NCBI GenBank assembly: GCA_002269645.1
Contig: NIVC01003059.1
Span: 8,500 to 72,499, forward strand
DNA from: Macrostomum lignano
Taxonomy: Eukaryota
Reading direction: 5' to 3'
DNA length: 64,000 nt
Shown one piece after another: positions 1 to 64,000 of the stretch. The first letter of the stretch is position 1. Each line of letters opens with the position of its first letter. Position numbers and translations under genes: made by a program. The notes below the pieces were generated by a model. The model was not told the DNA's origin, ran no database searches, and saw nothing but the letters and a program-made list of their open reading frames with translations.

Positions 1-212
1 GGTTGACTTTGACTTGACTGCAAATCACCACTATAGTTCACTATATACTACGAGTACGAGCGCGGTAAATCCGTCCGCATTACTAATTATATATTACAAT
101 AATTAGAGTATAGACGAGAGGCGGCCCACACAATTGATCCGTACCGTATGGTCCGTATATACATGTAGCTGCAGGTTCAGGTTAATTATGAGCTCAGCTC
201 CTATCAGCCAGT

Positions 213-331
213 GGCAACGGCCATACCACGTTGAAAACACCGGTTCTCGTCTGATCACCGAAGTTAAGCAACGTTGGGTTTGGTTAGTACTTGGATGGGT
301 GACCGCCTGGGAATACCAAATGCTGTTGTCT
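213..331 (+). rRNA. 5S rRNA: 5S rRNA copy 1
   Basis: Matches reference copy. Confidence 0.97.
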
Positions 332-907
332 TTTTTGCCTCTTTAACTGCATGCCGCGCGCTCATCAACTAACTCCAGCTGCTGCATGCATTAATACTTA
401 GGCCCAGGCCCACTAATCCGCCCGCGCCCGCCAACTGGATTGGATGCTGCTTGAATTTTTACCATACGGGCATACGGCATAGGTGTCTGCTGATTCCTTC
501 CTTTCGAGTTCCACTCCACTCTATCAAGTCAAGGGATTCGATTCGCGTTTCATATTTTGTATGCGCACTTTGCATTTGCACGCGGTAACGCTAATGCACT
601 TATGCACTGTGTATTAATAGTTTTACGAGTATCTCCATTTCTCACATGGGAATTTTACTTGATTTATAGCCATCAATCAATCAACTAGGAGGCGCGTTTG
701 TGTGCACACTTTCTAAACATGTCGGCTAAAAGAAAGAAAGAAACTTTTTCGCGCAGCTCTTTTCAAGCTCTAGTGCAAAATAATGCTGCACTAGTCGGCA
801 AAACTTACTTGGAGTAGATAAAGTTCAACAAAATATTTGCCCCTAGGGCTCGAGGCTCAAACGGAGAGCTGTGCACTCAGTGAGAGCCGGTTCCAGCTCG
901 TCTCTTT

Positions 908-1017
908 GCCGTATCGACGGTCTCTTACTGCGAAGACTCTTAATTTTGCATGGTAAGACACCGCGTGGATCCAATTGAGCGATCTACTCAATTTTGACAA
1001 GCCGCGCTACCGCGGCT
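908..1017 (+). ncRNA. SL RNA copy 1 (Sm site reads AATTTTG, one T fewer)
   Basis: Otherwise matches reference; lies in a noisy region. Confidence 0.85.
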
Positions 1018-1861
1018 GCCTAACAAAGCTAAAGACAACATCAATTAATTATAGTTGGTTGATTGTAATTCTGGATTTAGCGTGTCCTACTAATTATTTT
1101 AAACTAAATATTCTATTTACCCGCAAGTTGTAAATTAGTTGTTGCACCATTATAGCATAGCATGATATAGCGCGCATATGCATCGCGGTGTACAGAGGCT
1201 ATACTAGGCTATACTAGATCTCTTCGAGTTGCAATAATCAAATGTAATTTCTTAGATCGCTCTATGCGTGCGGATGTGCATATGTACATGTACAACTTTG
1301 TTGATGGCGCCAACAATGAATTATACTCAGCAACATTGAAAAGTCGCCATCACAGAAGATTCCGTCTGTGGTCGCCACTTTTGAGAGAGTGCAGGTAAAG
1401 TCTCTCTCAATATTTGCGAGCGACGCAACTCAGCTACGCCACGGCAGACTTGAGTTGAGGAATGGAGTGGGGGAGCGGTTGCGAGGTTTGGACGGATCAA
1501 AGCTACCCCGATCAGTTTTTCTGGCATCTTTTATTTAATTCAGAATAGTCCAAGACAAATTGATCACTGGCGCATAGAGTGGCGACTTTTCAATGTTGCT
1601 GAGTATACAGAGTCAAGCTGGACTGTACGCGTTACTGTTTGCGTTGAGCTAGTTAGGTTGACTTTGACTTGACTGCAAATCACCACTATAGTTCACTATA
1701 TACTACGAGCGCGGTAAATCCGTCCGCATTACTAATTATATATTACAATAATTAGAGTATAGACGAGAGGCGGCCCACACAATTGATCCGTACCGTATGG
1801 TCCGTATATACATGTAGCTGCAGGTTCAGGTTAATTATGAGCTCAGCTCCTATCAGCCAGT

Positions 1862-1980
1862 GGCAACGGCCATACCACGTTGAAAACACCGGTTCTCGTC
1901 TGATCACCGAAGTTAAGCAACGTTGGGTTTGGTTAGTACTTGGATGGGTGACCGCCTGGGAATACCAAATGCTGTTGTCT
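1862..1980 (+). rRNA. 5S rRNA: 5S rRNA copy 2
   Basis: Matches reference copy. Confidence 0.97.
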
Positions 1981-2554
1981 TTTTTGCCTCTTTAACTGCA
2001 TGCCGCGCGCTCATCAACTAACTCCAGCTGCTGCATGCATTAATACTTAGGCCCAGGCCCACTAATCCGCCCGCCCGCCAACTGGATTGGATGCTGCTTG
2101 AATTTTTACCATACGGGCATACGGCATAGGTGTCTGCTGATTCCTTCCTTTCGAGTTCCACTCCACTCTATCAAGTCAAGGGATTCGATTCGCGTTTCAT
2201 ATTTTGTATGCGCACTTTGCATTTGCACGCGGTAACGCTAATGCACTTATGCACTGTGTATTAATAGTTTTACGAGTATCTCCATTTCTCACATGGGAAT
2301 TTTACTTGATTTATAGCCATCAATCAATCAACTAGGAGGCGCGTTTGTGTGCACACTTTCTAAACATGTCGGCTAAAAGAAAGAAAGAAACTTTTTCGCG
2401 CAGCTCTTTTCAAGCTCTAGTGCAAAATAATGCTGCACTAGTCGGCAAAACTTACTTGGAGTAGATAAAGTTCAACAAAATAATTTGCCCTAGGGCTCGA
2501 GGCTCAAACGGAGAGCTGTGCACTCAGTGAGAGCCGGTTCCAGCTCGTCTCTTT

Positions 2555-2663
2555 GCCGTATCGACGGTCTCTTACTGCGAAGACTCTTAATTTTGCATGG
2601 TAAGACACCGCGTGGATCCAATTGAGCGATCTACTCAATTTTTGACAAGCCGCGCTAGCGGCT
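2555..2663 (+). ncRNA. SL RNA copy 2 (2-bp loss in terminal hairpin)
   Basis: Otherwise matches reference; lies in a noisy region. Confidence 0.85.
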
Positions 2664-3477
2664 GCCTAACAAAGCTAAAGACAACATCAATTAATTATAG
2701 TTGGTTGATTGTAATTCTGGATTTAGCGTGTCCTACTAATTATTTTAAACTAAATATTCTATTTACCCGCAAGTTGTAAATTAGTTGTTGCACCATTATA
2801 GCATAGCATGATATAGCGCGCATATGCATCGCGGTGTACAGAGGCTATACTAGGCTATACTAGATCTCTTCGAGTTGCAATAATCAAATGTAATTTCTTA
2901 GATCGCTCTATGCGTGCGGATGTGCATATGTATATGTACAACTTTGTTGATGGCGCCAACAATGAATTATACTCAGCAACATTGAAAAGTCGCCATCACA
3001 GAAGATTCCGTCTGTGGTCGCCACTTTTGAGAGAGTGCAGGTAAAGTCTCTCTCAATATTTTGCGAGCGACGACCAACTCAGCTACGCCACGGCAGACTT
3101 GAGTTGAGGAATGGAGTGGGGGAGCGTGTGCGAGGTTTGGACGGATCAAAGCTACCCCGATCAGTTTTTCTGGCATCTTTTATTTCAGAATAGTCCAGAC
3201 AAATTGATCACTGGCGCATAGAGTGCGACTTTCAATGTTGCTGAGTATACAGAGTCAAGCTGGACTGTACGCGTTACTGTTTGCGTTGAGCTAGTTAGGT
3301 TGACTTTGACTTGACTGCAAATCACCACTATAGTTCATATATACTACGAGTACTGCGCGCGTAAATCCGTCCGCATTACTAATATATATTACAATAATTA
3401 GAGTATAGACGAGAGGCGGCCCACACAATTGATCCGTACCGTATGGTCCGTATATACATGTAGCTGCAGGTTCAGGT

Positions 3478-3484
3478 TAATTAT
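3478..3484 (+). promoter_or_regulatory. TATA-like element at -30 of 5S
   Basis: TAATTAT at -30 to -24, a position where upstream AT-rich elements are known for many 5S genes. Function is not shown. Confidence 0.35.
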
Positions 3485-3507
3485 GAGCTCAGCTCCTATC
3501 AGCCAGT

Positions 3508-3626
3508 GGCAACGGCCATACCACGTTGAAAACACCGGTTCTCGTCTGATCACCGAAGTTAAGCAACGTTGGGTTTGGTTAGTACTTGGATGGGTGACCG
3601 CCTGGGAATACCAAATGCTGTTGTCT
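3508..3626 (+). rRNA. 5S rRNA: 5S rRNA, copy 3 (reference copy)
   Basis: 119 nt GGCAACGGCCATACCACGTTGAAAACACCGGTTCTCGTCTGATCACCGAAGTTAAGCAACGTTGGGTTTGGTTAGTACTTGGATGGGTGACCGCCTGGGAATACCAAATGCTGTTGTCT, a typical metazoan 5S. 5' GGCAAC pairs with 3' GTTGTC, and a T6 run follows. Confidence 0.99.
3557..3602 (+). promoter_or_regulatory. 5S internal control region (box A, box C), reference copy
   Basis: AGTTAAGC at +50 and TGGATGGGTGACCGCC at +80, the established positions of the Pol III type 1 promoter. Confidence 0.85.
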
Positions 3627-3631
3627 TTTTT
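3626..3631 (+). terminator. Pol III terminator T6 after 5S (every unit except copy 11)
   Basis: TTTTTT directly after GTTGTC. Confidence 0.9.
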
Positions 3632-4202
3632 GCCTCTTTAACTGCATGCCGCGCGCTCATCAACTAACTCCAGCTGCTGCATGCATTAATACTTAGGCCC
3701 AGGCCCACTAATCCGCCCGCGCCCGCCAACTGGATTGGATGCTGCTTGAATTTTTACCATACGGGCATACGGCATAGGTGTCTGCTGATTCCTTCCTTTC
3801 GAGTTCCACTCCACTCTATCAAGTCAAGGGATTCGATTCGCGTTTCATATTTTGTATGCGCACTTTGCATTTGCACGCGGTAACGCTAATGCACTTATGC
3901 ACTGTGTATTAATAGTTTTACGAGTATCTCCATTTCTCACATGGGAATTTTACTTGATTTATAGCCATCAATCAATCAACTAGGAGGCGCGTTTGTGTGC
4001 ACACTTTCTAAACATGTCGGCTAAAAGAAAGAAAGAAACTTTTTCGCGCAGCTCTTTTCAAGCTCTAGTGCAAAATAATGCTGCACTAGTCGGCAAAACT
4101 TACTTGGAGTAGATAAAGTTCAACAAAATAATTTGCCCTAGGGCTCGAGGCTCAAACGGAGAGCTGTGCACTCAGTGAGAGCCGGTTCCAGCTCGTCTCT
4201 TT

Positions 4203-4313
4203 GCCGTATCGACGGTCTCTTACTGCGAAGACTCTTAATTTTGCATGGTAAGACACCGCGTGGATCCAATTGAGCGATCTACTCAATTTTTGACAAGCCG
4301 CGCTACCGCGGCT
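4203..4313 (+). ncRNA. Spliced-leader (SL) RNA, copy 3 (reference copy)
   Basis: 45-nt leader exon GCCGTATCGACGGTCTCTTACTGCGAAGACTCTTAATTTTGCATG (4203-4247) ending in ATG. Donor GTAAGA at 4248 is complementary to TCTTAC in the exon. 5' hairpin GCCGT/ACGGT; stem AATTGAG/CTCAATT; Sm site AATTTTTG (4285-4292); terminal 7-bp stem AGCCGCG-CTAC-CGCGGCT (4296-4313). This is the flatworm SL architecture. The exact 5' and 3' ends are inferred. Confidence 0.93.
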
Positions 4314-4617
4314 GCCTAACAAAGCTAAAGACAACATCAATTAATTATAGTTGGTTGATTGTAATTCTGGATTTAGCGTGTCCTACTAATTATTTTAAAC
4401 TAAATATTCTATTTACCCGCAAGTTGTAAATTAGTTGTTGCACCATTATAGCATAGCATGATATAGCGCGCATATGCATCGCGGTGTACAGAGGCTATAC
4501 TAGGCTATACTAGATCTCTTCGAGTTGCAATAATCAAATGTAATTTCTTAGATCGCTCTATGCGTGCGGATGTGCATATGTACATGTACAACTTTGTTGA
4601 TGGCGCCAACAATGAAT

Positions 4618-4900
4618 TATACTCAGCAACATTGAAAAGTCGCCATCACAGAAGATTCCGTCTGTGGTCGCCACTTTTGAGAGAGTGCAGGTAAAGTCTC
4701 TCTCAATATTTGCGAGCGACGCAACTCAGCTACGCCACGGCAGACTTGAGTTGAGGAATGGAGTGGGGGAGCGGTGTGCGAGGTTTGGACGGATCAAAGC
4801 TACCCCGATCAGTTTTTCTGGCATCTTTTATTTCAGAATAGTCCAAGACAAATTGATCACTGGCGCATAGAGTGGCGACTTTTCAATGTTGCTGAGTATA
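4618..4900. mobile_element. MITE-like element present in every repeat unit (reference copy; 31 copies, e.g. 1322-1607, 29413-29695)
   Basis: Perfect 28-bp inverted repeat TATACTCAGCAACATTGAAAAGTCGCCA (4618-4645) / TGGCGACTTTTCAATGTTGCTGAGTATA (4873-4900). The ends are compatible with a TA target duplication (Tc1/mariner-like). No coding capacity. Confidence 0.75.
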
Positions 4901-5154
4901 CAGAGTCAAGCTGGACTGTACGCGTTACTGTTTGCGTTGAGCTAGTTAGGTTGACTTTGACTTGACTGCAAATCACCACTATAGTTCACTATATACTACG
5001 AGCGCGGTAAATCCGTCCGCATTACTAATTATATATTACAATAATTAGAGTATAGACGAGAGGCGGCCCACACAATTGATCCGTACCGTATGGTCCGTAT
5101 ATACATGTAGCTGCAGGTTCAGGTTAATTATGAGCTCAGCTCCTATCAGCCAGT

Positions 5155-6801: not shown

Positions 6802-6919
6802 GGCAACGGCCATACCACGTTGAAAACACCGGTTCTCGTCTGATCACCGAAGTTAAGCAACGTTGGTTTGGTTAGTACTTGGATGGGTGACCGCCTGGGA
6901 ATACCAAATGCTGTTGTCT
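6802..6919 (+). rRNA. 5S rRNA: 5S rRNA copy 5 (one G missing in GGG; real or sequencing error)
   Basis: CGTTGGTTTGG versus CGTTGGGTTTGG; lies directly upstream of the LTR insertion. Confidence 0.9.
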
Positions 6920-6967: not shown

Positions 6968-7253
6968 TGTTTGGGAGGTAGATTAGTAGCATTGATTTTC
7001 TTTCCAATTCCACTGCGTGATTTAATGTACGTGTTTATTATTCAATTTTCTATGTACGCTGATTTAGCCCAGGCCCATCTCACCCACCCCCCTCCACGCT
7101 GGCTGATTCTGACTGACTGCAATAAATATATCATCGAGAGGGCTTATTAGCCCTGTGTACGGTTTACGCTTTTCGTTTTGTTAGCGTCTCGCTTGAGCCT
7201 CAGCTCCAAAATAGTTATTGGCGGACCATCGGTCTTTTCATTTCTATAGTACA
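6968..7253 (+). repeat. 5' LTR (286 bp)
   Basis: TGTTTGGGAGG...CTATAGTACA; AATAAA at 7121-7126. Confidence 0.96.
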
Positions 7254-7256
7254 TTT

Positions 7257-7274
7257 TGGTAGCAGAGCGTGGTT
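7257..7274 (+). other. Primer-binding site, tRNA-iMet type
   Basis: TGGTAGCAGAGCGTGGTT, 3 nt after the LTR. The reverse complement AACCACGCTCTGCTACCA fits the 3' end of metazoan initiator tRNA-Met (...CTCTGCTACCA). Confidence 0.8.
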
Positions 7275-7339
7275 GGACAAGCCTAACTTACCACTGACGT
7301 GGCAAGCAATAGAACCCTACTGTGAAACGAAGGACCAGG

Positions 7340-10300
7340 ATGGACAGTGACGACGCCAATGAGCAGCAGCAGCAGGAAGCCCAAGACGATGCCGGCGCCC
7401 TACGTTTAGAGAAGCTGCGCTTCGAGAAATCCCGAAAAAAAGCAGCGTTCACTCGTTGCAAAAACAAGCTGTCTTGGCTGTTAAAGACGCACGCCTCTGA
7501 TGACGAAGTGCAAGTTGCCTGTGACGCTCTGTCAGACCTGCAAGATCTGGTCAGCGCCATCCAGGAAGAACTGCATGAAGGCTACGCCGACGCCAAGGAC
7601 AACGAGAGGCGACAGCGCCTACTAGACGAAATGGAGGAGACGGAGCGCGACTACCAAGCTGCCATGCAGCGCGTCGAAAGCGCCAGAAACCGGAGATTGC
7701 AGCGCGCCAAAGAAGCTCCTCCTGCCGCGAGCTCAAGCGGTGAGAACGCTGCGGGTGACCAAGAAGAAGCAGCTGGTGAGTTACACAAACTTTCTGGCAG
7801 TGCTGCGTCCAGCAAAGGATCCAACCCGAAGGAGCTTTCAAAGGATTTGTGGAAGATGCTGAAGCGTGTTGAAATCCCAACGTTTAGTGGAGAAAAGCAG
7901 AAGTATGAAAACTGGAAGGCAGCCTTTGTTGCGTGCATCGACAGCGCCCCTGCAACACCAGAATTCAAGTTGCTGCAGCTTAGGCAGTACCTCAGCGGTG
8001 AAGCTTTGAAGGTTATAGAACATCTAGGACACTCTGCTGCGGCATATGAAGCTGCAAAAGAGAGATTAGAGAGAGAATTTGGTGGACAGCGTAGGCAACT
8101 TGCTCTGCACTTGGAAGAGCTGGACAGCTTCCCGATCGTGCGAAATGGAAACGCCAAGGATCTGAAAAGCTTTGCTAATCTACTGGATGTGGCTGTCGTT
8201 AACCTTGAGGATGCGGGTAAAGAGGCAGAGCTTCAAGATGGGATGTTGTATGTGAGGCTGCAGAAAAAGTTGCCTGAGCAGATGGTTGCCAGCTACCGGA
8301 GGTGGATCTTTGAGCAGCGGAAGCCGGAGAGTGTTAGAAATCTGAGAATTTGGGTGCTGCAAGAAGCAGAGTTTCAGACTGAAGCGTCAGAGATTGTGCA
8401 GGGCGTTGCCACCATGCAGCAGGAGCGTCAAAAGCGAGAGCAGCGACCAAAGACTTTCGTTACTACGGACAGTGACAAGAAGGTACAGCGAAAGATTTGC
8501 ATTGTTTGTCAAGGTGATCACGAGCTGTGGTCCTGCAGTGAGTTCAAGGAGCTTCCGGTGGAAAAACGCTGGGACGCGGCGCAGAGCTCGAAGTGTTGTT
8601 TCCGGTGCTTGGGCCAAGGACATCTTGGTAGCCAATGTCGGCGTGGTCGTCGGTGCGGCATCAGCAGCTGCACAAAGTTCCATCATCGCCTGCTTCATGC
8701 AGAAAAAGTGTTGGCCAAGTCTGGTGAAGCGAAGCAGACTGCATCCAAGGACGCTAAATCCGCTTCCAGTTCAGGAAAGACTGGACCGGTGACGCTTCTG
8801 TCGGCTGGTGAAACGGCAATCTCGCTACGAACGGTACCTGTAGTCCTACGGAACGGGTCCCGGAAGCTGAAGGTGAATGCCTTGCTCGACGATGCCAGTA
8901 CCAGGAGCTACGTCAACATCGGGATAGCAGAAGCGCTTGGAGTGCATGGAGCGCTCGAAAAGGTGAAAGTCGGAGTCATCAATGGCCAAACAGAGACCTT
9001 CATGACAGCCCCAGTCTGCTTTAGCTTGGAAAGTCTGGATGGTCAGACCAGCTCAATGATCGTCGCCTTCACCGCTGATCACGTGACTGGGTCCCTCAAA
9101 GGCGTCGACTGGCACGAAGAAGCGCAGCAGTGGCCTCATCTGAGAAATGTGCCGTTTCCGAAGCTGTGTGAGCCTGCAGTAGTGGACTTGCTGATTGGTG
9201 CTGATCACCCGGATCTTCACGTGTCTCTCAAAGAAATCGTCGGACAGCCGCTGGAGCCAAAGGCGCGCCTGACTCCCCTGGGTTGGACGTGCATCGGTCG
9301 CACAGAGCAGGACAATTCTGAGATGCAGAACGCCCATTTTGCTGCCACTTTCTTCAGCTGCGATTCCGAATCTGGTCAGGTGGCTAAGATCCTGCGGCAG
9401 TTTTGGGAGATCGAGAACGTCTCAGAAGGTGCCAATCGAAGTCCGCTGACCGCCGATGAGGAGAGAGCCGTCCAGCAAGCCAAGTCGTCGCTAAAGTACA
9501 CGAAGGGCCGTTACCAGATCGGGATTCCATGGAAAAAGGATCGGCTGGCTCCAGCAGGCACTTTCTCAATGGCCTTGAAGCGACTAAAGAACACCGAACA
9601 GCGGCTGATTAAGGATATGAACGTCTGCAAGCAGTATCAGGAGATCCTTGAAAAGTATGAACAGCAAGGTTATATCCGAAAAGTGTCGCAAGCTGAGACT
9701 GAAGGCCGCTGTTTCCTGCCGCACTTCCCAGTGCTGCGGCCAGACAAGGCTACGACAAAAGTGCGAATAGTCTTTGATGCATCGGCTGCCAGATTGAACG
9801 ACCAGATCCTCCAGGGCCCCAAACTGCAGAGGGATTTGGTTGACGTGCTGCTTCGGTTCCGCCGACACCCGATTGCGATCGCATGCGACGTAGCGGAAAT
9901 GTATCTCCAGATCGAGATGGACCCGAAGGACAGGCCGCTGCACAGTTTCCTTTGGCGGGACGCCGATCCTTCAAAGCAGCCGGATGTCTACGAGTTCAAC
10001 AGAGTGGTGTTCGGCGTCACCAGCTCTCCGTTCTTGGCACAGTTCGTTACCCGCTGCCATGCTGAAAAGTCAAAAGGTGAGCTTCCAGAGGCGGCCGAGA
10101 CAGTACTGCACTCTACCTATATGGATGACAGCCTGGACTCTGCGCCCACCGAGGCAGCCGCCTGCAGGCTGTACGATCAACTCAGTGAGCTCTGGAGGCG
10201 CGCCGGCATGCACGCGCGCAAGTGGGTCTCGAACTCGAGAGCTGTGCTCGATAGAATCCCACCTGAAGACCGTGCAGCAGAAGTTACCTTGGACAGCAAA

Positions 10301-11008
10301 GAACTACCAAGCACCAAGACACTGGGTGTCACGTGGCAGAGTGAGCAGGACGAATTTACCTTTAAAGATGAAAACGAGTCGTGTCAGGTGACCACAAAAA
10401 GAGGTCTGCTGAAGAAGCTAGCGAGCGTCTTCGATCCACTTGGACTGATCTCCCCGTTTGTCGTGCAGGCGAAAATTCTGATGCAGGAGCTTTGGCAGTC
10501 AATCTGGTCAATTCTGAGGGAGACGGACGTCACCGATGAGGAGCTGCTAAGCGCGTTTGCTGGAGCAGAGGCACTTCTGAATTCAAGGCCGCTGACGTAC
10601 CAGACGGCGCATCCGAGTGATGATGTGCCGCTGACGCCGAATCACTTCCTTATCGGGCAAGTCGGCGGGAAGTTTGCACCGGAGGTCGACGCTGCCATCG
10701 CCCGCAGTCCTTCAAGAAGATGGCGTCACGTCCAGCAGCTGGTGTCGCAGATCTGGCGCCGGTGGTTGCGCGAGTGGCTGCCGGGACTCGCACCGCGGAG
10801 CAAGTGGCGCCGCGAGCTGCCTGACCTACAACCTGGAGACGTGGCGCTGCTGGTGAGCCCGGACTCGCCTCGGGGTCACTGGCCGCTGGCTCGCGTGCTG
10901 GAGGTCATGCGCGGTTCGGACGGTCACGTGAGAGTCGCCTCAATCAGAGTCGGTGATCGCACAATGACGAGACCAATAACAAAGTTGTGTCCAATATCTG
11001 CAGGTTAG
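7340..11008 (+). CDS. BEL/Pao Gag-Pol polyprotein (Gag, protease, RT, integrase C-terminal tail); RNase H and integrase core missing
   Basis: First ATG at 7340 (the track starts at GTG 7322). Three Cys-His motifs: CIVCQGDHELWSC, CFRCLGQGHLGSQC, CGISSCTKFHHRLLH. Protease ALLDDAS; RT KVRIVFDAS, DVAEMYLQI, FGVTSSPFLA, YMDD. The sequence ...FDPLGLISPFVVQAKILMQELWQ joins directly to the integrase tail EELLSAFAGAEALLNSRPL...WRRWLREWL...GHWPLARV. Confidence 0.93.
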   Translation: MDSDDANEQQQQEAQDDAGALRLEKLRFEKSRKKAAFTRCKNKLSWLLKTHASDDEVQVACDALSDLQDLVSAIQEELHEGYADAKDNERRQRLLDEMEETERDYQAAMQRVESARNRRLQRAKEAPPAASSSGENAAGDQEEAAGELHKLSGSAASSKGSNPKELSKDLWKMLKRVEIPTFSGEKQKYENWKAAFVACIDSAPATPEFKLLQLRQYLSGEALKVIEHLGHSAAAYEAAKERLEREFGGQRRQLALHLEELDSFPIVRNGNAKDLKSFANLLDVAVVNLEDAGKEAELQDGMLYVRLQKKLPEQMVASYRRWIFEQRKPESVRNLRIWVLQEAEFQTEASEIVQGVATMQQERQKREQRPKTFVTTDSDKKVQRKICIVCQGDHELWSCSEFKELPVEKRWDAAQSSKCCFRCLGQGHLGSQCRRGRRCGISSCTKFHHRLLHAEKVLAKSGEAKQTASKDAKSASSSGKTGPVTLLSAGETAISLRTVPVVLRNGSRKLKVNALLDDASTRSYVNIGIAEALGVHGALEKVKVGVINGQTETFMTAPVCFSLESLDGQTSSMIVAFTADHVTGSLKGVDWHEEAQQWPHLRNVPFPKLCEPAVVDLLIGADHPDLHVSLKEIVGQPLEPKARLTPLGWTCIGRTEQDNSEMQNAHFAATFFSCDSESGQVAKILRQFWEIENVSEGANRSPLTADEERAVQQAKSSLKYTKGRYQIGIPWKKDRLAPAGTFSMALKRLKNTEQRLIKDMNVCKQYQEILEKYEQQGYIRKVSQAETEGRCFLPHFPVLRPDKATTKVRIVFDASAARLNDQILQGPKLQRDLVDVLLRFRRHPIAIACDVAEMYLQIEMDPKDRPLHSFLWRDADPSKQPDVYEFNRVVFGVTSSPFLAQFVTRCHAEKSKGELPEAAETVLHSTYMDDSLDSAPTEAAACRLYDQLSELWRRAGMHARKWVSNSRAVLDRIPPEDRAAEVTLDSKELPSTKTLGVTWQSEQDEFTFKDENESCQVTTKRGLLKKLASVFDPLGLISPFVVQAKILMQELWQSIWSILRETDVTDEELLSAFAGAEALLNSRPLTYQTAHPSDDVPLTPNHFLIGQVGGKFAPEVDAAIARSPSRRWRHVQQLVSQIWRRWLREWLPGLAPRSKWRRELPDLQPGDVALLVSPDSPRGHWPLARVLEVMRGSDGHVRVASIRVGDRTMTRPITKLCPISAG

Positions 11009-11722
11009 TTTGCGAACCTTTGCTAGAGAATTAGACTTTGTCAGGTTTCGCAATTTTTCTGATGAGTTGTTCAATTTTCCTGTTTGTTGCATTGTTCGTA
11101 AAGTCTTCTTTCCCTTTCATGCTAATAGGAATCACCCTGTTTTTGCCGTCTTAACCCAATTTTCGCTTTCAGTGTTCAACGCGATTAACATTCATTATTT
11201 AGCTATTTATTTTCTTGCGTGAATTTTTGCTGAATAGCAGTCGTTACGGTTTAGTGAATTTGTCGGCAAGTTTGTCTTTTGCGTTTTTTGAGTTTTTTAC
11301 GAGCGATGTTTGCATTATTTGAGCTCTACTTAATATTGCTTGATTTTCTGCGCTTAGAAGTACCATAGTTTATGCGCCAGTTCCGACCTTTTGATAGCCC
11401 AATGCTTACAATTGTTGTTTCAGTTTTTGTTTCAGTTGCGTTTGGTGGCGGAAGTCTGCGTTCGTGTTCAATTTTGAAATTTTATATGATAGCTGACGTA
11501 CTTCTGCAAAATTTTCGATTGTCATCTACGATCTGCGTACTTATCTTCACCTTTTTCTCTATTTTTCTACCATTCACAATGTCGCCATCAATGTTTCATG
11601 CAACGTTGTTTTTTTGCTTTTTGAGTTCGATTTTGTATCACGCATCGTTTTCGAATATTTTCCTATTACCGTATTCGTTTTCATTGTTTCATCCCTCGAA
11701 TAGTTTTTGTCATTGTTATGCC

Positions 11723-11735
11723 AAGGTGGGGGGTA
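11723..11735 (+). other. Polypurine tract
   Basis: AAGGTGGGGGGTA immediately before the 3' LTR. Confidence 0.8.
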
Positions 11736-12020
11736 TGTTTGGGAGGTAGATTAGTAGCATTGATTTTCTTTCCAATTCCACTGCGTGATTTAATGTACGT
11801 GTTTATTATTCAATTTTCTATGTACGCTGATTTAGCCCAGGCCCATCTCACCCACCCCCTCCACGCTGGCTGATTCTGACTGACTGCAATAAATATATCA
11901 TCGAGAGGGCTTATTAGCCCTGTGTACGGTTTACGCTTTTCGTTTTGTTAGCGTCTCGCTTGAGCCTCAGCTCCAAAATAGTTATTGGCGGACCATCGGT
12001 CTTTTCATTTCTATAGTACA
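11736..12020 (+). repeat. 3' LTR (285 bp)
   Basis: Matches the 5' LTR by eye except C5 versus C6 in one homopolymer. Confidence 0.96.
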
Positions 12021-21738: not shown

Positions 21739-21848
21739 GGCAACGGCCATACCACGTTGAAAACACCGGTTCTCGTCTGATCACCGAAGTTAAGCAACGT
21801 TGGGTTTGGTTAGTACTTGGATGGGTGACCGCCTGGGAATACCAAATG
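21739..21848 (+). pseudogene. 5S copy 11, 3'-truncated
   Basis: Ends at +110. A 22-bp deletion (CTGTTGTCTTTTTTGCCTCTTT) removes the 3' strand of helix I and the T6 terminator. Confidence 0.9.
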
Positions 21849-22032
21849 AACTGCATGCCGCGCATGCCGCGCGCTCATCAACTAACTCCAGCTGCTGCAT
21901 GCATTAATACTTAGGCCCAGGCCCACTAATCCGCCCGCGCCCGCCAACTGGATTGGATGCTGCTTGAATTTTTACCATACGGGCATACGGCATAGGTGTC
22001 TGCTGATTCCTTCCTTTCGAGTTCCACTCCAC

Positions 22033-22048
22033 CCATGGTGCAGAAGGA
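22033..22048 (+). repeat. Left TIR of DNA transposon
   Basis: CCATGGTGCAGAAGGA. Confidence 0.92.
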
Positions 22049-22267
22049 TTTCTGTGTACGACGGAAGGCAAATTTCAGTTTTAGCCTGCTGTACGACAGT
22101 ACGACACAAGTGAACTAAGTAATTTTTTTTTGTACGACAAACTACAATGCAGAAACCCACATACTCCCGACCCAGACAAAGAGTAATAATAAGTTGTAAG
22201 TGGTAATAACAAGTTTACAAGTAATTGAAGTAATATTAATTATGAATGATTCAATTAAATGAATTTA

Positions 22268-25200
22268 TCAATTGGCATTATTGTCGCCGTCTTTGGGCTT
22301 CTGCTTCCGACGGCCGATGAATGGCACACGGGAAACAGCTGCTGCGCGCCTCTGCAGCACCTTGCCGATGGCGTCCTTAGTTTTGGCAGCAAAAAACGGA
22401 CTCCAATGTGGACGAATCCCACGGCTTTTGTCGCCTTTAAAAAAAAGTTTCGCAGAGTCGTCGAGAAATTCTTCGCATGCATCGCCGCCCATGGGTGGTA
22501 GCAACCAAGCTAACTTAGCGCGAAGCTGAAGGGTGTCGTTGGTTTGGCCTCCCTGTTGCTGTTGCGACCGCATAGTCGAGTAGAAGCTCTCGACAATCGC
22601 TTCTGGAAGAAAAAGGCGGAAAAATATGTAGATGAAATTCTGATCAAATCTGACTGACTTGCCCAAGGTGACATTAGTTAATTTGTAGATAGCAACTGGA
22701 ATTTGCAACTCACCAGTGCCACCTCGGTGTAGTGCAAAATCAAGTAGTGCACATGTTGCAGGGCCGGCTCGCTGGAAAACGTCTGGGTCGGCATAGAAAG
22801 ACGCATAAACTGCTGCTTCGTCCACCACAACAGATGAAAATTCACCACCTGCTGTCGAACCCGATAGATGCAGCAATAACTGACGTGCCAAAGTGGGTGC
22901 TGCTACTTTTAAATCCGTCAGTGGCCCGTTGATGGAAGGCACCAGCCAGCTACTGCGGCCTTCACCCGTGAAAATGACGTGGCGTATAGTGTCCACAAAG
23001 TTCGCAGCATACCTAAGTTTAGTGGACAAAAAATAAAATTAAATACAATTCGATTTCGTTACATTTTTCTGTAGCAAAGTGGTCTTGAAATATGTGATTT
23101 CCAGCCTCACACTAGTTATAGTACCAGTGCATTTATAGTTTTGATTGTGAAGGAGCTCACCTTCGGGCCATGGGAACTTTCAGATGAGCCAGGTGCTTAT
23201 GCTTGACTGCCTCGGTCACAAGCCGCTTAAAGGCGGGAGCGCACTGGTCTGCAAACTCTTCTGCTGCAACTTCAGGGTCCCTGCATGCAATGGCACGGAT
23301 GATGGCAGCTGCATCGAAGGAGGCACAATCAGAGGTGCTCGGGTCGCAGCAGCGTTGAATGCGAGCAACGAAGCTGCGGTGAAGTGCCCCGGCAAGCTTC
23401 TGTGTATCACGTGCAATGTCCTGAGGAAGGAGGAAGAAGGATGGAGCTGAATAATGAAGCACAAAGGAGAATATGGTAACTTTGGCAGAGTACATAATAT
23501 AATGATTGCACAAGCTTACCTCCATGTCTCGAGCGCGCCACTGATCCTGGTCAGAGGCAGAGCCAGCAACCGGCTTTTTTACTTTGAGCCAGCCGTCCAG
23601 CAGAGTCACGCCATCAAATGTGCCACCAACGTGCAGATTGTCGATGTGCTCATGCAGCGTGGGGTAGTCCTCACTACGAAACTGCTCTGCATGGACATGG
23701 AGGAACTCAGCTACCAATGGCCATAAGGTAGACACTTTCCAGTGGGGCAGCTGAAGATTCTGCGCAATCTCCATAAGAGCTCTGTGCAAGTGTTATGTGT
23801 TTGGAGTAAGTAGGTAATCAAAAAGTTGATCCCATAGTAATTTTACTACCCACAAGGCATATAAATCAACTTACTTGATTGGCGCAAAGAGATCCAGGTA
23901 GCCCAACAAGTCGCACACAAAATCAAATCCGAACATTATGTACGGCTGTGGGTCGTTATCTCTGACTCGTGGTTTCTCGGCTCGAAATGCGGCATGCAGA
24001 TCGCCGTAGCAGCGAAAGATGGTCTGCCATTGGTTCATGGCTGAACTGGTAAAGCGCTGCGAGGCAAATGATGAAATTGCTCCGGCATGGTCCTCGGAAG
24101 CAATCTGTTTTTTTACAAACAAAGAATTTGGAGTAGTTTTATAGCAAACGTATATCTAAAACCCTCGGTAAACTATTCAGTTAGACATTCAGGTTGCATA
24201 CTTACTTCCAAAGCCGAACGGCCACGCCCGTGGCCAAAAAGATGCGGAAACAGGTTTGCCCTGTCAATAAAATCCTGCAACGCCTCTCCGTCGTCACTAT
24301 CGCGCACGTTAGTCACGGCCAGGTTTATAAAGTGGGCCGGGTCCCAGTTAATTGGGATCTCATAGTCGGCTCCGGCCTCCTTCAGCTTCTCAAATATTGC
24401 CGTTTTAAAAGGCGCAGTTTGATATTGCCCGTCGGCAATGACGCCCACAAGACGATCAATGGGCAAATCAAAGTTCGCCAGACCTTGAAAAAGCCGCTGC
24501 ACCAGAACGGGGCCGCTGCCGTCCATCTCTTTGGAATAAACGGCCGGGGCGCCACCTGGGATAGCAACGGCGTCACCAGTCTCGCACCTGTTAGGGGTTA
24601 TCCGTTTTAAGGAGGTAGTAAAAGTAATATTTAAGTGGCGGATACTCCTAATGTACATTACTTTTCCTTCTTCCTCCCTACTTACCTGGCCAACACCATA
24701 ACAGCTTGGTTAGTGATGCGACCTGGTGTGCTTTTGTCGCAAGCAATGGCGTAGCAGGGAGGACATCCGGTGGACGGCAGTGGGGTCTGCAGGAACTCAG
24801 CCGTATACTTGTCAGCGGTGACCTCAAACAACGACCACAACTCCTTGTTAAACTCCCTAGTTGGATGCATAGTGGGTGGTAAATTAACAAATAGCGTACA
24901 AAATAACCATAGCTTAGCTAATGGCATACAGATACAAACCACATAATATGGTACATACCGGCCGTGGCCCCGCTGGCCAACTTCAGCGTCCGACCGATAA
25001 AGCATGCTCACGAACGTCTCATAGTGCTTACTAGCTGACGCTGATTCGATATTGGCAACAGAGCAACGCAAAAGGCGCCGAACAGTTCCTGAGACGCGCT
25101 TCTCTTCAATCTTGCGGTCCGCATACTTCTTCATAGCTTTCACATGGCCGACAGCCTCGATACCAGAGAGATGTTTCACTATCCTATAACGAAGCCGGGA

Positions 25201-26544
25201 GAATGCCTCGCCACACGCAAGGATCTCAGTCATTTCCAGCTTTGTAATGAGCTGCCCTCGTGCAAGCGTGCCCATCGACTTGGGGTTTCTATAAGAAGTT
25301 AGAGAAATGAAAGTTTATAATAAATAAATGGAAAAGGCCAACTGGATTGTCTTATTGCCTGTTAGATAAAAGTACATACAATGGACTTACAAAGTGCTGT
25401 GCCTCTCCGCAACAGTCAACTTTGGCGAGAAGGCCGTGCCTTCCATTAAAACGTTGTAGCACGGGACACAGTATAAAATTGTGTCCTCACCGCAAGGTGC
25501 TGTGGCGAGCATCTCGTTCTCCAGGAGCTCGGCCATGTTGCTAGCCACAATTGGCGGCACTTTTGGTAAGTTTTGTCCCCGAGAGTTTGAGCTGGAGGTA
25601 GCCTGTGACAGCGCCAAGTCCCGAACAACATTTAGTATAATCGGAAGTAGGGCAAGTTGTCGGGCTGCCTCCGCCATTTTAATTTCCAGCCCAGTGACAA
25701 TTGCCAAAAGATCCCGACCTGACGTGCTTGATGATGCTGTAGATGCAGCCTCAGCAGGACTGGGAAGGATAGGTGAAGCATCAGCAAGCTGCCTAACAAA
25801 TGAGCTGGATCTTTGGTCAACGGCGGATGATTCCAGTACTTCAATGTTTACTACCAGATTTGTCTTTGGTCCCTCAGACTGCTGCTGCTCTGCCTCAGGC
25901 TCAGTGGTCATTGGAACTTCAGGACGTTCAGGTGACTCTTCATCACTGGCACTTTCAACCTCCAGCACCTCATGGCTGACCATGGCCTTTGTGATGCGTT
26001 TTTTTACCTGCTTCTCATTCTCATTGGCAGGCCTGGCAGCAATTAGGTCGCGAACATCAGCATGGTCAGGTCTGCAATATGTTAAAATCTTATTGGCTGG
26101 GTCTTCTTTGTGCCAGCGACTCCGATGAGTTTTTCTGCTACTACCATTGTTTCGATAAATGCGGCAGTTGGACAGTGGAAGCCCTCGCTGAAGGCAATCC
26201 ACACAGTAATGTGGGTCACACACAGTTCCGCGAGGCTTCTTAGTTGGTGGCTCTTCAGTTTGTGCAGATGAAGACGCTGCATGAGACAAACTCAGTGGAC
26301 GCTTTGATTTTGCTTGTACTTGCACATTAGCCTGTTGCTGTTGGCGTTGCCGCTGTGCCTGTTGCATGATTGGCATATGGGCCCAAGCACACTCAGCAGC
26401 CTTCGCCTTCTCTACTACTGCCTCTGGCTCTGCCTGGTCAGCCTGGTCCTGGATACTAGCTTGCAAAGCTGCAGCTAGTGGTGTCTCTGTCTCAGACTGA
26501 TTTTCTTCAGAGCCAGAACTTGATGTGCTACTGCTACGAGACAT
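22268..26544 (-). CDS. DDE transposase, 9 exons, 1140 aa (hAT-like, DxxH variant)
   Basis: Hand-spliced with GT-AG introns. Exons: 26544-25391, 25288-24959, 24856-24686, 24587-24206, 24104-23875, 23781-23520, 23420-23161, 23012-22714, 22602-22268. Sum 3423 nt, all phases consistent. Motifs: YAIACDKST (D1), VGVIADGQY (D2), WDPAHFINLAV, SQRFTSS (hAT TRW-like), GGTEAIVESFYSTM (E; hAT S-A-x-x-E-R-x-F-S-like), plus N-terminal CxxC...H motifs. Confidence 0.85.
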
Positions 26545-28585
26545 TATAGAGATTAATTTTGGCACAATAAATCAAAAAGCAAATGCTGAATAGCTGAATT
26601 TAGCTGAAAGACAAGTTAATTTTTTTGGCAATCAGCATTTAATTTAGTATTATTAGTTATGACCAAATCTAATCAATAAGTAAGCATAAACCAAACTAGT
26701 TATCAGTTGAATAAAAATATGGTTTTGTTTACAAAAATTAAATAAATAATTATAATTATACTTATAGAAATTTAGGAAATAAAGATTAGACATTTAGTAA
26801 TAGGATATAATTAATGCACATTTCAATATATTTTGTTTTTTTTATAAAATAATTTCATATACTATACTGTACCATTCTACAATCTAGCTCTACCAAATGT
26901 TCTACTCAACTCTACCAAATATAATCAATTGCATAATTTTATACAACTCAATTACTCAATCTAGTCAACTTACAATACAATACAATAGCAAAATTTGCTA
27001 TGAATTTAGAATTACTAAAAGACTAAAAGTAAAGGTAATAAGATAAATTTATACACTTGTCAATGTCAAGTCAACTTGGAAGTTGTATTTGCTAAAGTTG
27101 CTGCCAAGCACCTGAAGTTTTGTCTCAAATTAGTTGCAGACTTGCAGTAGGCCCTAATTTATATATATTCACTTCTTTTCTTTCATGAAACGAAGCAAAA
27201 CTTGGTGTCTCTTGGCTAGATGGCTATTAGCTACTTCTACTTGTTATTTCGTAAGAAATATTTGTTGGTTTCAAGCCAAGCAATAAGCCATAGCTGTCAA
27301 CTTAATTACTATGTCTTTACTCAATACTCAAGTACTCAACTGTCAACTTCAACTTGTCAAGTAAAGTCAAATTTGACAAATAAAAAATGCATTTAATTAA
27401 TTAATTACTAATTATTAAAAGAAAGTGATAAGATAATTTTATAAACTTGTCTAATGTCAACTCAATTACTGAAATTGTGAAATTACACAACTGACAACTT
27501 GAACTTTTAAAATAAAAACTTGCAACTAAGATTAAGAACAAGAAGTTAAGTTAAGAACTAGAATTAGAACAGAACACTAGAAGTTCTAGAACTAATTTAT
27601 GAAGGTAAAAGTGATAAAATGTTTAAAAAATAAACTTGAAAGAATCACCAGATGTCCAGACAGACACAGACACGAGACACGAGTCAGTCAGTCAGACAGA
27701 CCAGTCAGTCAGTCACTAGTCACTTTCACTAACTCAAAGTCTCAAACAACAAACTGTCACAAGTGTCACTTGACAGTTGACCTTGTCATTTGTCAACAGT
27801 CAAAGTCAATGAGTCAACTGCAACAATGCAACATGCAACTCAACTCAACAGTCTCAACTTAATTAATTACTCAACTTGTTACTCGTACTAACTACTAATA
27901 AATTTACTTGTCAAAGTTGAAAAATTACAAATTGCTAGTTTAAGTTTTGCAACAAATTAAGAAAACTTAAAAGTTACTTTTAGTTGTAGCTTGTAGTATA
28001 GTATATAGTGCTAGTGCAGTGCAGAGTGCATAGCCATAGATTATAGAAAAGTAAAAGTTATAAGGGATAAGACAAAAGACATTAGTCAGATCAGATCTTA
28101 TCTTAGATCACATCACGATCACGAGAGACGAGACTGACCGGAGGACGAGAATTACAAGATCAGATGATTATGAATTAATTCACATTCACAATTCAATTCC
28201 CAGTAACACGATACAACGATACGCATTTCAAAAAAGAAATAAACAAGGTTAAGATTAAAACAACGGATGCACATTTGTGTGGCCTTGAATATAAAAATGT
28301 GAAATTTGGTGCCACATAATAAAAAATTATTATTAAGTATGCCAAGATTATATTTTATTTGTGCCTCGTAAAAAGAACTTTGAATAAATTTAATTTAATT
28401 ATGAAAACGAAATTGTATTTTTAAATGCCTATGCATATAGCTTTCTAGTCAGAGATGTACGACAGTGACAGTGTGGCCAACGACGGTACGACATGTACGA
28501 CAAAGAGCCCTTGCAAAAATGAACGATGTACGACATGTACGACAACCAACCTCAATGTACGACGGAAATTTCCGTCGTACACCCG

Positions 28586-28601
28586 TCCTTCTGCACTATG
28601 G
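28586..28601 (-). repeat. Right TIR of DNA transposon
   Basis: TCCTTCTGCACTATGG, reverse complement CCATAGTGCAGAAGGA. Confidence 0.92.
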
Positions 28602-62889: not shown

Positions 62890-63008
62890 GGCAACGGCCA
62901 TACCACGTTGAAAACACCGGTTCTCGTCTGATCACCGAAGTTAAGCAACGTTGGGTTTGGTTAGTACTTGGATGGGTGACCGCCTGGGAATACCAAATGC
63001 TGTTGTCT
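62890..63008 (+). rRNA. 5S rRNA: 5S rRNA copy 32
   Basis: As copy 12. Confidence 0.97.
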
Positions 63009-63583
63009 TTTTTGCCTCTTTAACTGCATGCCGCGCGCTCATCAACTAACTCCAGCTGCTGCATGCATTAATACTTAGGCCCAGGCCCACTAATCCGCCC
63101 GCGCCCGCCAACTGGATTGGATGCTGCTTGAATTTTTACCATACGGGCATACGGCATAGGTGTCTGCTGATTCCTTCCTTTCGAGTTCCACTCCACTCTA
63201 TAAGTCAAGGGATTCGATTCGCGTTTCATATTTTGTATGCGCACTTTGCATTTGCACGCGGTAACGCTAATGCACTTATGCACTGTGTATTAATAGTTTT
63301 ACGAGTATCTCCATTTCTCACATGGGAATTTTACTTGATTTATAGCCATCAATCAATCAACTAGGAGGCGCGTTTGTGTGCACACTTTCTAAACATGTCG
63401 GCTAAAAGAAAGAAAGAAACTTTTTCGCGCAGCTCTTTTCAAGCTCTAGTGCAAAATAATGCTGCACTAGTCGGCAAAACTTACTTGGAGTAGATAAAGT
63501 TCAACAAAATAATTTGCCCTAGGGCTCGAGGCTCAAACGGAGAGCTGTGCACTCAGTGAGAGCCGGTTCCAGCTCGTCTCTTT

Positions 63584-63694
63584 GCCGTATCGACGGTCTC
63601 TTACTGCGAAGACTCTTAATTTTGCATGGTAAGACACCGCGTGGATCCAATTGAGCGATCTACTCAATTTTTGACAAGCCGCGCTACCGCGGCT
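63584..63694 (+). ncRNA. SL RNA copy 32
   Basis: As copy 4. Confidence 0.9.
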
Positions 63695-64000
63695 GCCTAA
63701 CAAAGCTAAAGACAACATCAATTAATTATAGTTGGTTGATTGTAATTCTGGATTTAGCGTGTCCTACTAATTATTTTAAACTAAATATTCTATTTACCCG
63801 CAAGTTGTAAATTAGTTGTTGCACCATTATAGCATAGCAATGATATAGCGCGCATATGCATCGCGGTGTACGAGGCTATAATAGGCTATACTAGATCTCT
63901 TCGAGTTGCAATAATCAAATGTAATTTCTTAGATCGCTCTATGCGTGCGGATGTGCATATGTACATGTACAACTTTGTTGATGGCGCCAACAATGAATTA

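Follow-up and report, generated by a model that had tools for sequence, protein, structure and literature searches.

The stretch of Macrostomum lignano DNA analysed in this study (contig NIVC01003059.1, positions 8,500 to 72,499; 64,000 nucleotides, hereafter the window) is filled by a tandem array in which a 5S ribosomal RNA (rRNA) gene and a gene of spliced-leader (SL) RNA type are carried together in every repeat. The repeats are arranged head-to-tail with a period of 1647 bp, and the array runs past both ends of the window. The reference unit, whose features are collected in Table 1, recurs 32 times at spacings of 1646 to 1649 bp, and most units are 100% identical to it across all 1647 bp in a BLAST comparison with the window. 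This period was measured by exact matches and BLAST, and Tandem Repeats Finder (longest period, 500) gave none. The window contains 32 5S genes and 32 SL cores (a 40-nt core of the SL gene, counted by exact match, with spacings of 1646 to 1648 bp), which gives a 1:1 ratio, with every copy of either gene on the plus strand. In the reference unit, the 45-nt exon of the SL-type gene begins 576 nt past the end of the 5S gene. An earlier note on this DNA had proposed that the two genes are co-amplified 1:1 in a unit of this length, with the SL gene approximately 576 bp downstream of the 5S gene on the same strand, and both the counts and the distance bear this out; the check with the Rfam model RF00001 that it suggested returns 32 5S genes at 95 to 116 bits. 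Neither a permissive Rfam search (E ≤ 10), which detected only the 5S gene, nor ARAGORN, which found no tRNA, indicated a further RNA gene in the unit.

The 5S gene scores 116.5 bits over model positions 1 to 120 in 30 of the copies, and the remaining two, which are damaged, score 109.1 and 95.5 bits, compared with a gathering threshold of 38 bits over the full model. A T6 run at positions 3626 to 3631 ends the gene as an RNA polymerase III (Pol III) terminator and follows all 30 identical copies. The damaged genes, at 6802 to 6919 and 21740 to 21859, are the sole copies that depart from the consensus, and both lie in units that bear a transposon; one has a 1-nt deletion, and the other is without its last ~10 nt and the T-run terminator. 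Such units may evade homogenisation or face relaxed selection. The repeat has been amplified before: Zadesenets et al. obtained a 1645-bp 5S rDNA fragment of M. lignano using outward-facing 5S primers, termed its spacer non-transcribed, and used this spacer as the probe for fluorescence in situ hybridization (FISH), which gave a single large 5S cluster. Both published primers match exactly in all 32 units, with an in silico product of 1642 to 1645 bp, and this agreement, along with the transposon exons described below, identifies the DNA as that of the flatworm M. lignano.

The SL-type gene begins with the exon GCCGTATCGACGGTCTCTTACTGCGAAGACTCTTAATTTTGCATG, in which the string GAAGACTCTTAATTTTGCATG (canonical counterpart, GAAGACTCAATTTATTGCATG) precedes the donor GTAAGA. 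When residues 4203 to 4316 are folded alone, three hairpins are predicted (ΔG = −37.6 kcal/mol, z = −2.96 versus shuffles). The gene thus has a short 5′ exon followed by a GU donor that is paired to upstream exon bases in the predicted stem-loop I, with a pairing probability of 0.98 to 1.0, and an Sm site of the form RAU4-6GR, here AAUUUUUGA, that is predicted to be unpaired in both the minimum free energy (MFE) and the centroid folds. These features are those of the SL RNA class, as is the homology described below to an SL RNA whose leader is found on mRNAs. All elements of the SL architecture that the earlier note had listed (an exon up to ATG, the GTAAGA donor, an Sm site, and a terminal hairpin) were located at 4203 to 4313. 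No Rfam family matches the SL part at E ≤ 10, including nematode SL1 and SL2 (RF00198 and RF00199). To our knowledge, SL RNAs from different phyla cannot be aligned to each other, so no such match is expected. The SL-type RNA contains internal T4 and T5 runs, and the gene has no TATA box at −30; these indirect indications favour transcription by RNA polymerase II (Pol II) over Pol III, and the gene is probably of the small nuclear RNA (snRNA) type. The same presumption in the earlier note is therefore judged probable, and motifs in the 3′ flank that resemble those of a U1 gene point in the same direction.

Table 1. Features of the 5S-SL array and of the mobile elements that it contains (positions are those of the window).
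Feature	Position	Strand	Remarks
Tandem 5S-SL array	1–64000	+	Rfam, exact-match spacing, and BLAST of the unit against the window
Reference repeat unit	3508–5154	+	1647 bp, 44% GC
5S rRNA gene	3508–3626	+	119 nt; RF00001, 116.5 bits, E = 5e-25, full-length model
SL-type exon	4203–4247	+	45 nt, ends in ATG; 38/45 identical to canonical Macrostomum SL
5′ splice donor GTAAGA	4248–4253	+	First 11 intron nt same as in canonical SL RNA
Stem-loop I (predicted)	4213–4258	+	Exon nt 11–28 pair with nt 37–56, donor included; MFE and centroid folds
Hairpin II (predicted)	4260–4282	+	GAUCC/GGAUC core as in canonical SL RNA; bigger loop, additional outer pairs
Sm-binding-type site AATTTTTGA	4285–4293	+	RNA AAUUUUUGA; predicted single-stranded, between hairpins II and III
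Hairpin III (predicted)	4296–4313	+	GC-rich 7-bp stem, loop CUAC; outer 4 bp as canonical, 3 inner bp new and fully complementary
3′ flank motifs	4315–4334	+	CCTAACAAA (4315–4323) and TAAAGACAA (4326–4334); candidate snRNA-type 3′-end formation signal
MITE-like element	4618–4900		~283 bp; 26- to 28-bp terminal inverted repeats (4618–4645, 4873–4900) flanked by TA
BEL/Pao LTR retrotransposon	6968–12020	+	In the spacer 3′ of a 5S gene; 5-bp target-site duplication (CCAGC)
DNA transposon	22033–28601	−	16-bp terminal inverted repeats; 8-bp target-site duplication CACTCCAC; multi-exon gene

The leader of M. lignano rebuilt from mRNAs is GCCGTAAAGACGGTCTCTTACTGCGAAGACTCAATTTATTGCATG, the single leader in published surveys, and the identical sequence is the leader of M. 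cliftonense and M. hystrix (Wiberg et al. 2023, Supplementary Table 3). The exon in the window agrees with it at 38 of 45 positions, with differences at exon positions 7, 8, 33 to 36, and 38 only, and the assumption of the earlier note that this 45-mer is the spliced leader of the species is not supported. Each of the seven differences falls either within the 5′ tail or within the apical loop of stem-loop I. The segments that are identical to the canonical RNA, positions 9 to 32 and 39 to 56, hold the donor and all pairs of stem-loop I but one, which involves position 38 and is formed in the fold of the window RNA only. Given seven mismatches in 45 positions to a leader that is invariant in three species, the 5S-linked gene is, judged by its sequence, a diverged paralogue of the canonical SL gene and not the canonical gene itself. 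Eight copies of the canonical M. lignano SL RNA gene (109 nt) were located by Ustyantsev and Berezikov (2021), who kept BLAST matches to the canonical leader at 100% identity only and would therefore have missed the 5S-linked array, with its at least 32 copies.

Public collections were scanned using a 21-mer common to the variant and canonical forms, and the SL RNA genes compared in this study are those of the window and of two contigs, L003 and L004. L003, a metagenome contig (Ga0302322), carries a canonical gene, whose exon matches at 45/45 positions, and after it a protein-coding gene, but no 5S gene; the adjacent coding sequence is possibly Na/K-ATPase beta-subunit-like, as identified by eye. 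L004 (JAGQZA010000190.1) is a eukaryotic contaminant contig of a ‘Flavobacteriaceae’ metagenome-assembled genome that also carries a canonical SL RNA gene without a 5S gene. In L004, a U1 snRNA gene (1121 to 1283; 151.7 bits) precedes the SL gene (1589 to 1697) by 306 bp on the same strand, which would be an SL-U1 linkage in a Macrostomum-like worm, and TTAGGG-like repeats are present at approximately 270 to 340 of this contig. Thus, in the two genomic contexts seen, the canonical genes are not linked to 5S; they are dispersed, beside a protein-coding gene or the U1 gene, whereas the window gene lies inside the 5S repeat. Two metatranscriptome contigs (Ga0316592), L001 and L002, represent mRNAs that start with the canonical leader; their products are an isocitrate-dehydrogenase-like protein and a CCHC zinc-finger protein. 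The JGI environmental data sets therefore hold Macrostomum-type sequences (L001, L002, and L003).

A BLAST alignment of the unit with the canonical gene of L003 covers the RNA region only (77 nt, 89.6% identity, E = 4e-22), and the flanks are unalignable. Since the flanks have diverged to this extent while the RNA region is retained, the split from the canonical gene is old, and the RNA has been conserved since. The RNAs of the window, L003, and L004 adopt the same three-hairpin layout in separate folds, all of which leave the Sm site between hairpins II and III single-stranded. The folds were compared separately; the RNAalifold consensus on a MAFFT alignment mis-paired hairpins II and III owing to indels. 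Features shared by the window gene and the canonical gene (Ustyantsev and Berezikov 2021; L003 and L004) are an exon of 45 nt up to the AUG, the three hairpins, the donor GUAAGACACCG, a U-rich site of the Sm type, and motifs in the 3′ flank that resemble each other. Apart from the seven exon differences, the window gene is distinguished by a larger loop of hairpin II, a longer hairpin III, and the Sm site AAUUUUUGA, which is nearer the consensus than the AUUUUUAG found at this place in the canonical genes.

The likeness to L004 reaches beyond the RNA itself. In the unit, the 9-mer CCTAACAAA has a single occurrence, immediately past hairpin III, and in L004 it is again found once, immediately past the U1 gene; TAAAGACAA likewise occurs once in each, 12 nt past hairpin III of the SL RNA in both. 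An origin of the window gene as a retrocopy is rejected on these grounds, because a copy of the mature RNA would lack the 3′-flank 9-mers. Since the donor-site helix, the three hairpins, the Sm site, and the 3′-flank motifs have all been kept, the gene can be argued to be a working snRNA-type gene, and we regard it as moderately probable that it is functional and could supply mRNAs with a variant leader of 45 nt that terminates in AUG.

From what is established for 5S and SL genes, we infer the following course of expression. On the 5S gene, Pol III would initiate by way of the internal promoter and stop at the T6 run, and the SL-type gene would be transcribed separately by Pol II to yield a capped RNA of ~115 nt, which would be bound by Sm proteins and then serve as a donor in trans-splicing. 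Because both genes reside in one repeat, the copy number and the sequence of the SL-type gene are tied to those of 5S; unequal crossing-over and gene conversion would homogenise the two genes jointly, fixing a 1:1 dosage and near-identical copies.

A miniature inverted-repeat transposable element (MITE)-like sequence occupies the same place in every unit, as seen in inverted BLAST hits, and because it is fixed in all units, its insertion predates the last homogenisation of the array. An element with inverted repeats of the same start, TATACTCAGCAA, is also present in L003 (1137 to 1427). Two larger transposons break up the array. The BEL/Pao element has long terminal repeats (LTRs) of ~286 bp that end in TG...CA and differ by a 1-bp indel alone, which suggests a very recent insertion; its gag-pol open reading frame (ORF) of 1228 amino acids is without the RNase H/integrase core, indicating an internal deletion, and the nearest database proteins are ~50% identical, none of them from M. 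lignano. In the DNA transposon, the exons are identical to the M. lignano UniProt entry A0A1I8FS65 at 385 of 385 and 211 of 211 residues. A 75% identity of the concatenated ORFs had suggested that this element came from a congener, and this is rejected, as translated introns had lowered the figure. Among 5.8 billion proteins, its product has two relatives only, both from M. lignano. No Pfam domain is found in it, and A0A1I8FS65 is named ‘SET domain-containing protein’ in UniProt; the product seems to represent a transposase family that is confined to this lineage and has been annotated as a host gene. The element can be labelled hAT-like by two traits only, its duplication of 8 bp and the shortness of its inverted repeats. 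That the two transposons target 5S or SL genes site-specifically was considered and rejected, given that they occupy differing spacer positions and have ordinary target-site duplications.

The units at the edges of the window (1 to 3507 and 62890 to 64000) differ from the consensus by nearly only small indels, with at most 13 gap openings and 0 to 1 mismatches per unit. Through such indels, the first SL copy lacks a T of its Sm site, and the last SL copy has a deletion within hairpin III. The indels look like long-read consensus error, not true variation.

Whether a functional gene also supplies a leader that is used is a separate question, and we consider actual use of the variant leader on mRNAs to be possible but doubtful. 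Several observations weigh against an active second leader. The surveys of M. lignano, M. cliftonense, and M. hystrix rebuilt one leader only, the canonical one; neither of the two recovered trans-spliced mRNA contigs carries the variant leader (0/2; both are canonical); and no paper in the searchable literature contains the variant string. At least 32 fully active copies should have surfaced the variant in SL discovery based on k-mers. No promoter element common to the window and the canonical genes was detected: the best upstream block, TACT..AGTAG..AACAAAA at approximately −100, is shared with L003 at 18 of 35 positions, a score reached by 359 of 2000 shuffles, and it is not conserved in L004, so it was rejected as a candidate. 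Moreover, the units are near-identical, and the array itself is uninformative on selection, with just three SL RNA sequences available for comparison. A peptide search for the translated leader in a protein collection gave no match, even for words common with the canonical leader, and hence had no power.

A rival explanation is that the gene is an old SL copy that was trapped in the 5S spacer, lost its promoter activity, and was then homogenised passively with the essential 5S genes, appearing intact only because little decay preceded its fixation. The exclusive report of the canonical leader, in three Macrostomum species and on the recovered mRNAs, fits such a silent copy, as do the non-significant upstream similarity to the canonical genes and the description of the spacer as non-transcribed by the authors who amplified it; the MITE, fixed in every unit too, shows that neutral passengers do reach fixation in this array. 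On the other hand, a silent copy would have to explain why all functional elements of the RNA region are retained although the flanks have changed beyond alignment. All seven exon changes spare the conserved helix segments, the changes in the hairpins are compensated, the Sm site is nearer the consensus than that of the canonical genes, and the 3′-flank motifs are conserved outside the RNA. A silent passenger is accordingly an explanation to be kept in mind but one that we do not expect to be correct. If the gene does act as a donor, then M. lignano, and perhaps the genus, would have a second, hitherto unrecognised spliced leader, with the 5S array as its sole source and a subset of mRNAs as its targets; we give this reading limited credence. 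The subset may be defined by, e.g., particular operon positions, cell types, or stages, and any contribution of the variant leader is probably minor or condition-restricted, as the published surveys saw only the canonical leader.

It is very improbable that the 45-mer is instead the principal leader of a Macrostomum-like species outside those surveyed, with the array as its main SL locus. A copy number of at least 32 would be typical of a main SL locus, and the anatomy of the gene is complete; nevertheless, the transposon exons match the M. lignano protein without a difference across 596 residues, the repeat has the size of the M. lignano amplification product, and the leader of M. lignano is known, different, and invariant in three species. 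Least credible of all is an artefact of mis-assembly or over-polishing of long reads as the source of the near-perfect repeats or of the 5S-SL juxtaposition: the 100% identity of most units and the clustering of indel-only, read-error-like differences at the window edges would suit it, but outward-facing 5S primers give an independent genomic amplification product of ~1645 bp, which agrees with the unit and must span the SL gene, the two transposon insertions have clean target-site duplications at differing spacer positions, and FISH reveals one large 5S cluster.

Linkage of 5S and SL genes is a recurrent arrangement that is known from nematodes, kinetoplastids, euglenids, and dinoflagellates and is noted in general terms in reviews. 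A close parallel is the SL1-5S repeat of Caenorhabditis (~110 copies in C. elegans and ~65 in C. briggsae), which likewise combines an SL RNA gene and a 5S gene in one short tandem repeat and forms a nearly monomorphic array with copy numbers locked 1:1. The C. elegans unit is 1 kb long with the two genes on opposite strands, in contrast to the 1.65-kb M. lignano unit, in which both are on the same strand. The two systems also differ in which gene is linked. In Caenorhabditis, it is the gene of the major leader SL1, and the SL2-type variants are dispersed, whereas in M. lignano the linked gene is the variant, with an exon that departs from the single leader on record for this species, and the canonical genes are found elsewhere. 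Dinoflagellates resemble M. lignano in having both 5S-linked and SL-only SL RNA genes in one genome, with differing SL RNA gene sequences; however, they are an unrelated lineage with a 22-nt leader, and their exon is conserved between the two contexts, whereas that of the M. lignano array differs from the canonical exon at 7 of 45 positions. Among flatworms, the SL genes of trematodes and cestodes also form homogenised tandem repeats that undergo concerted evolution (e.g., the 595-bp repeat of Schistosoma mansoni), but these units contain the SL gene only, and no 5S gene has been described in them. A 2025 survey of the SL loci of parasitic flatworms never mentions 5S, and a full-text literature search, of the kind that the earlier note had proposed for Macrostomum, retrieved no earlier report of a 5S-SL linkage in Macrostomum or any flatworm. 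The flatworm array is thus a new instance of a recurrent arrangement, with the twist that a variant, and not the main leader gene, has been linked.

If the gene is silent, the array is an example of passenger fixation in rDNA. If it is active, M. lignano has two classes of SL RNA, and the current annotation of trans-splicing, for which the canonical leader alone was searched, would miss some trans-spliced genes and underestimate the SL copy number (8 versus at least 32). Should the second leader prove true, the dosage of SL would be mechanically coupled to that of 5S, and the species, in which transgenesis is possible, would make SL specialisation, of which no flatworm case is known, experimentally tractable. 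According to a recent survey, such specialisation is lacking in parasitic flatworms; in an active state, a diverged paralogue that is locked to 5S in a free-living, basal flatworm would be the obvious test case for this conclusion.

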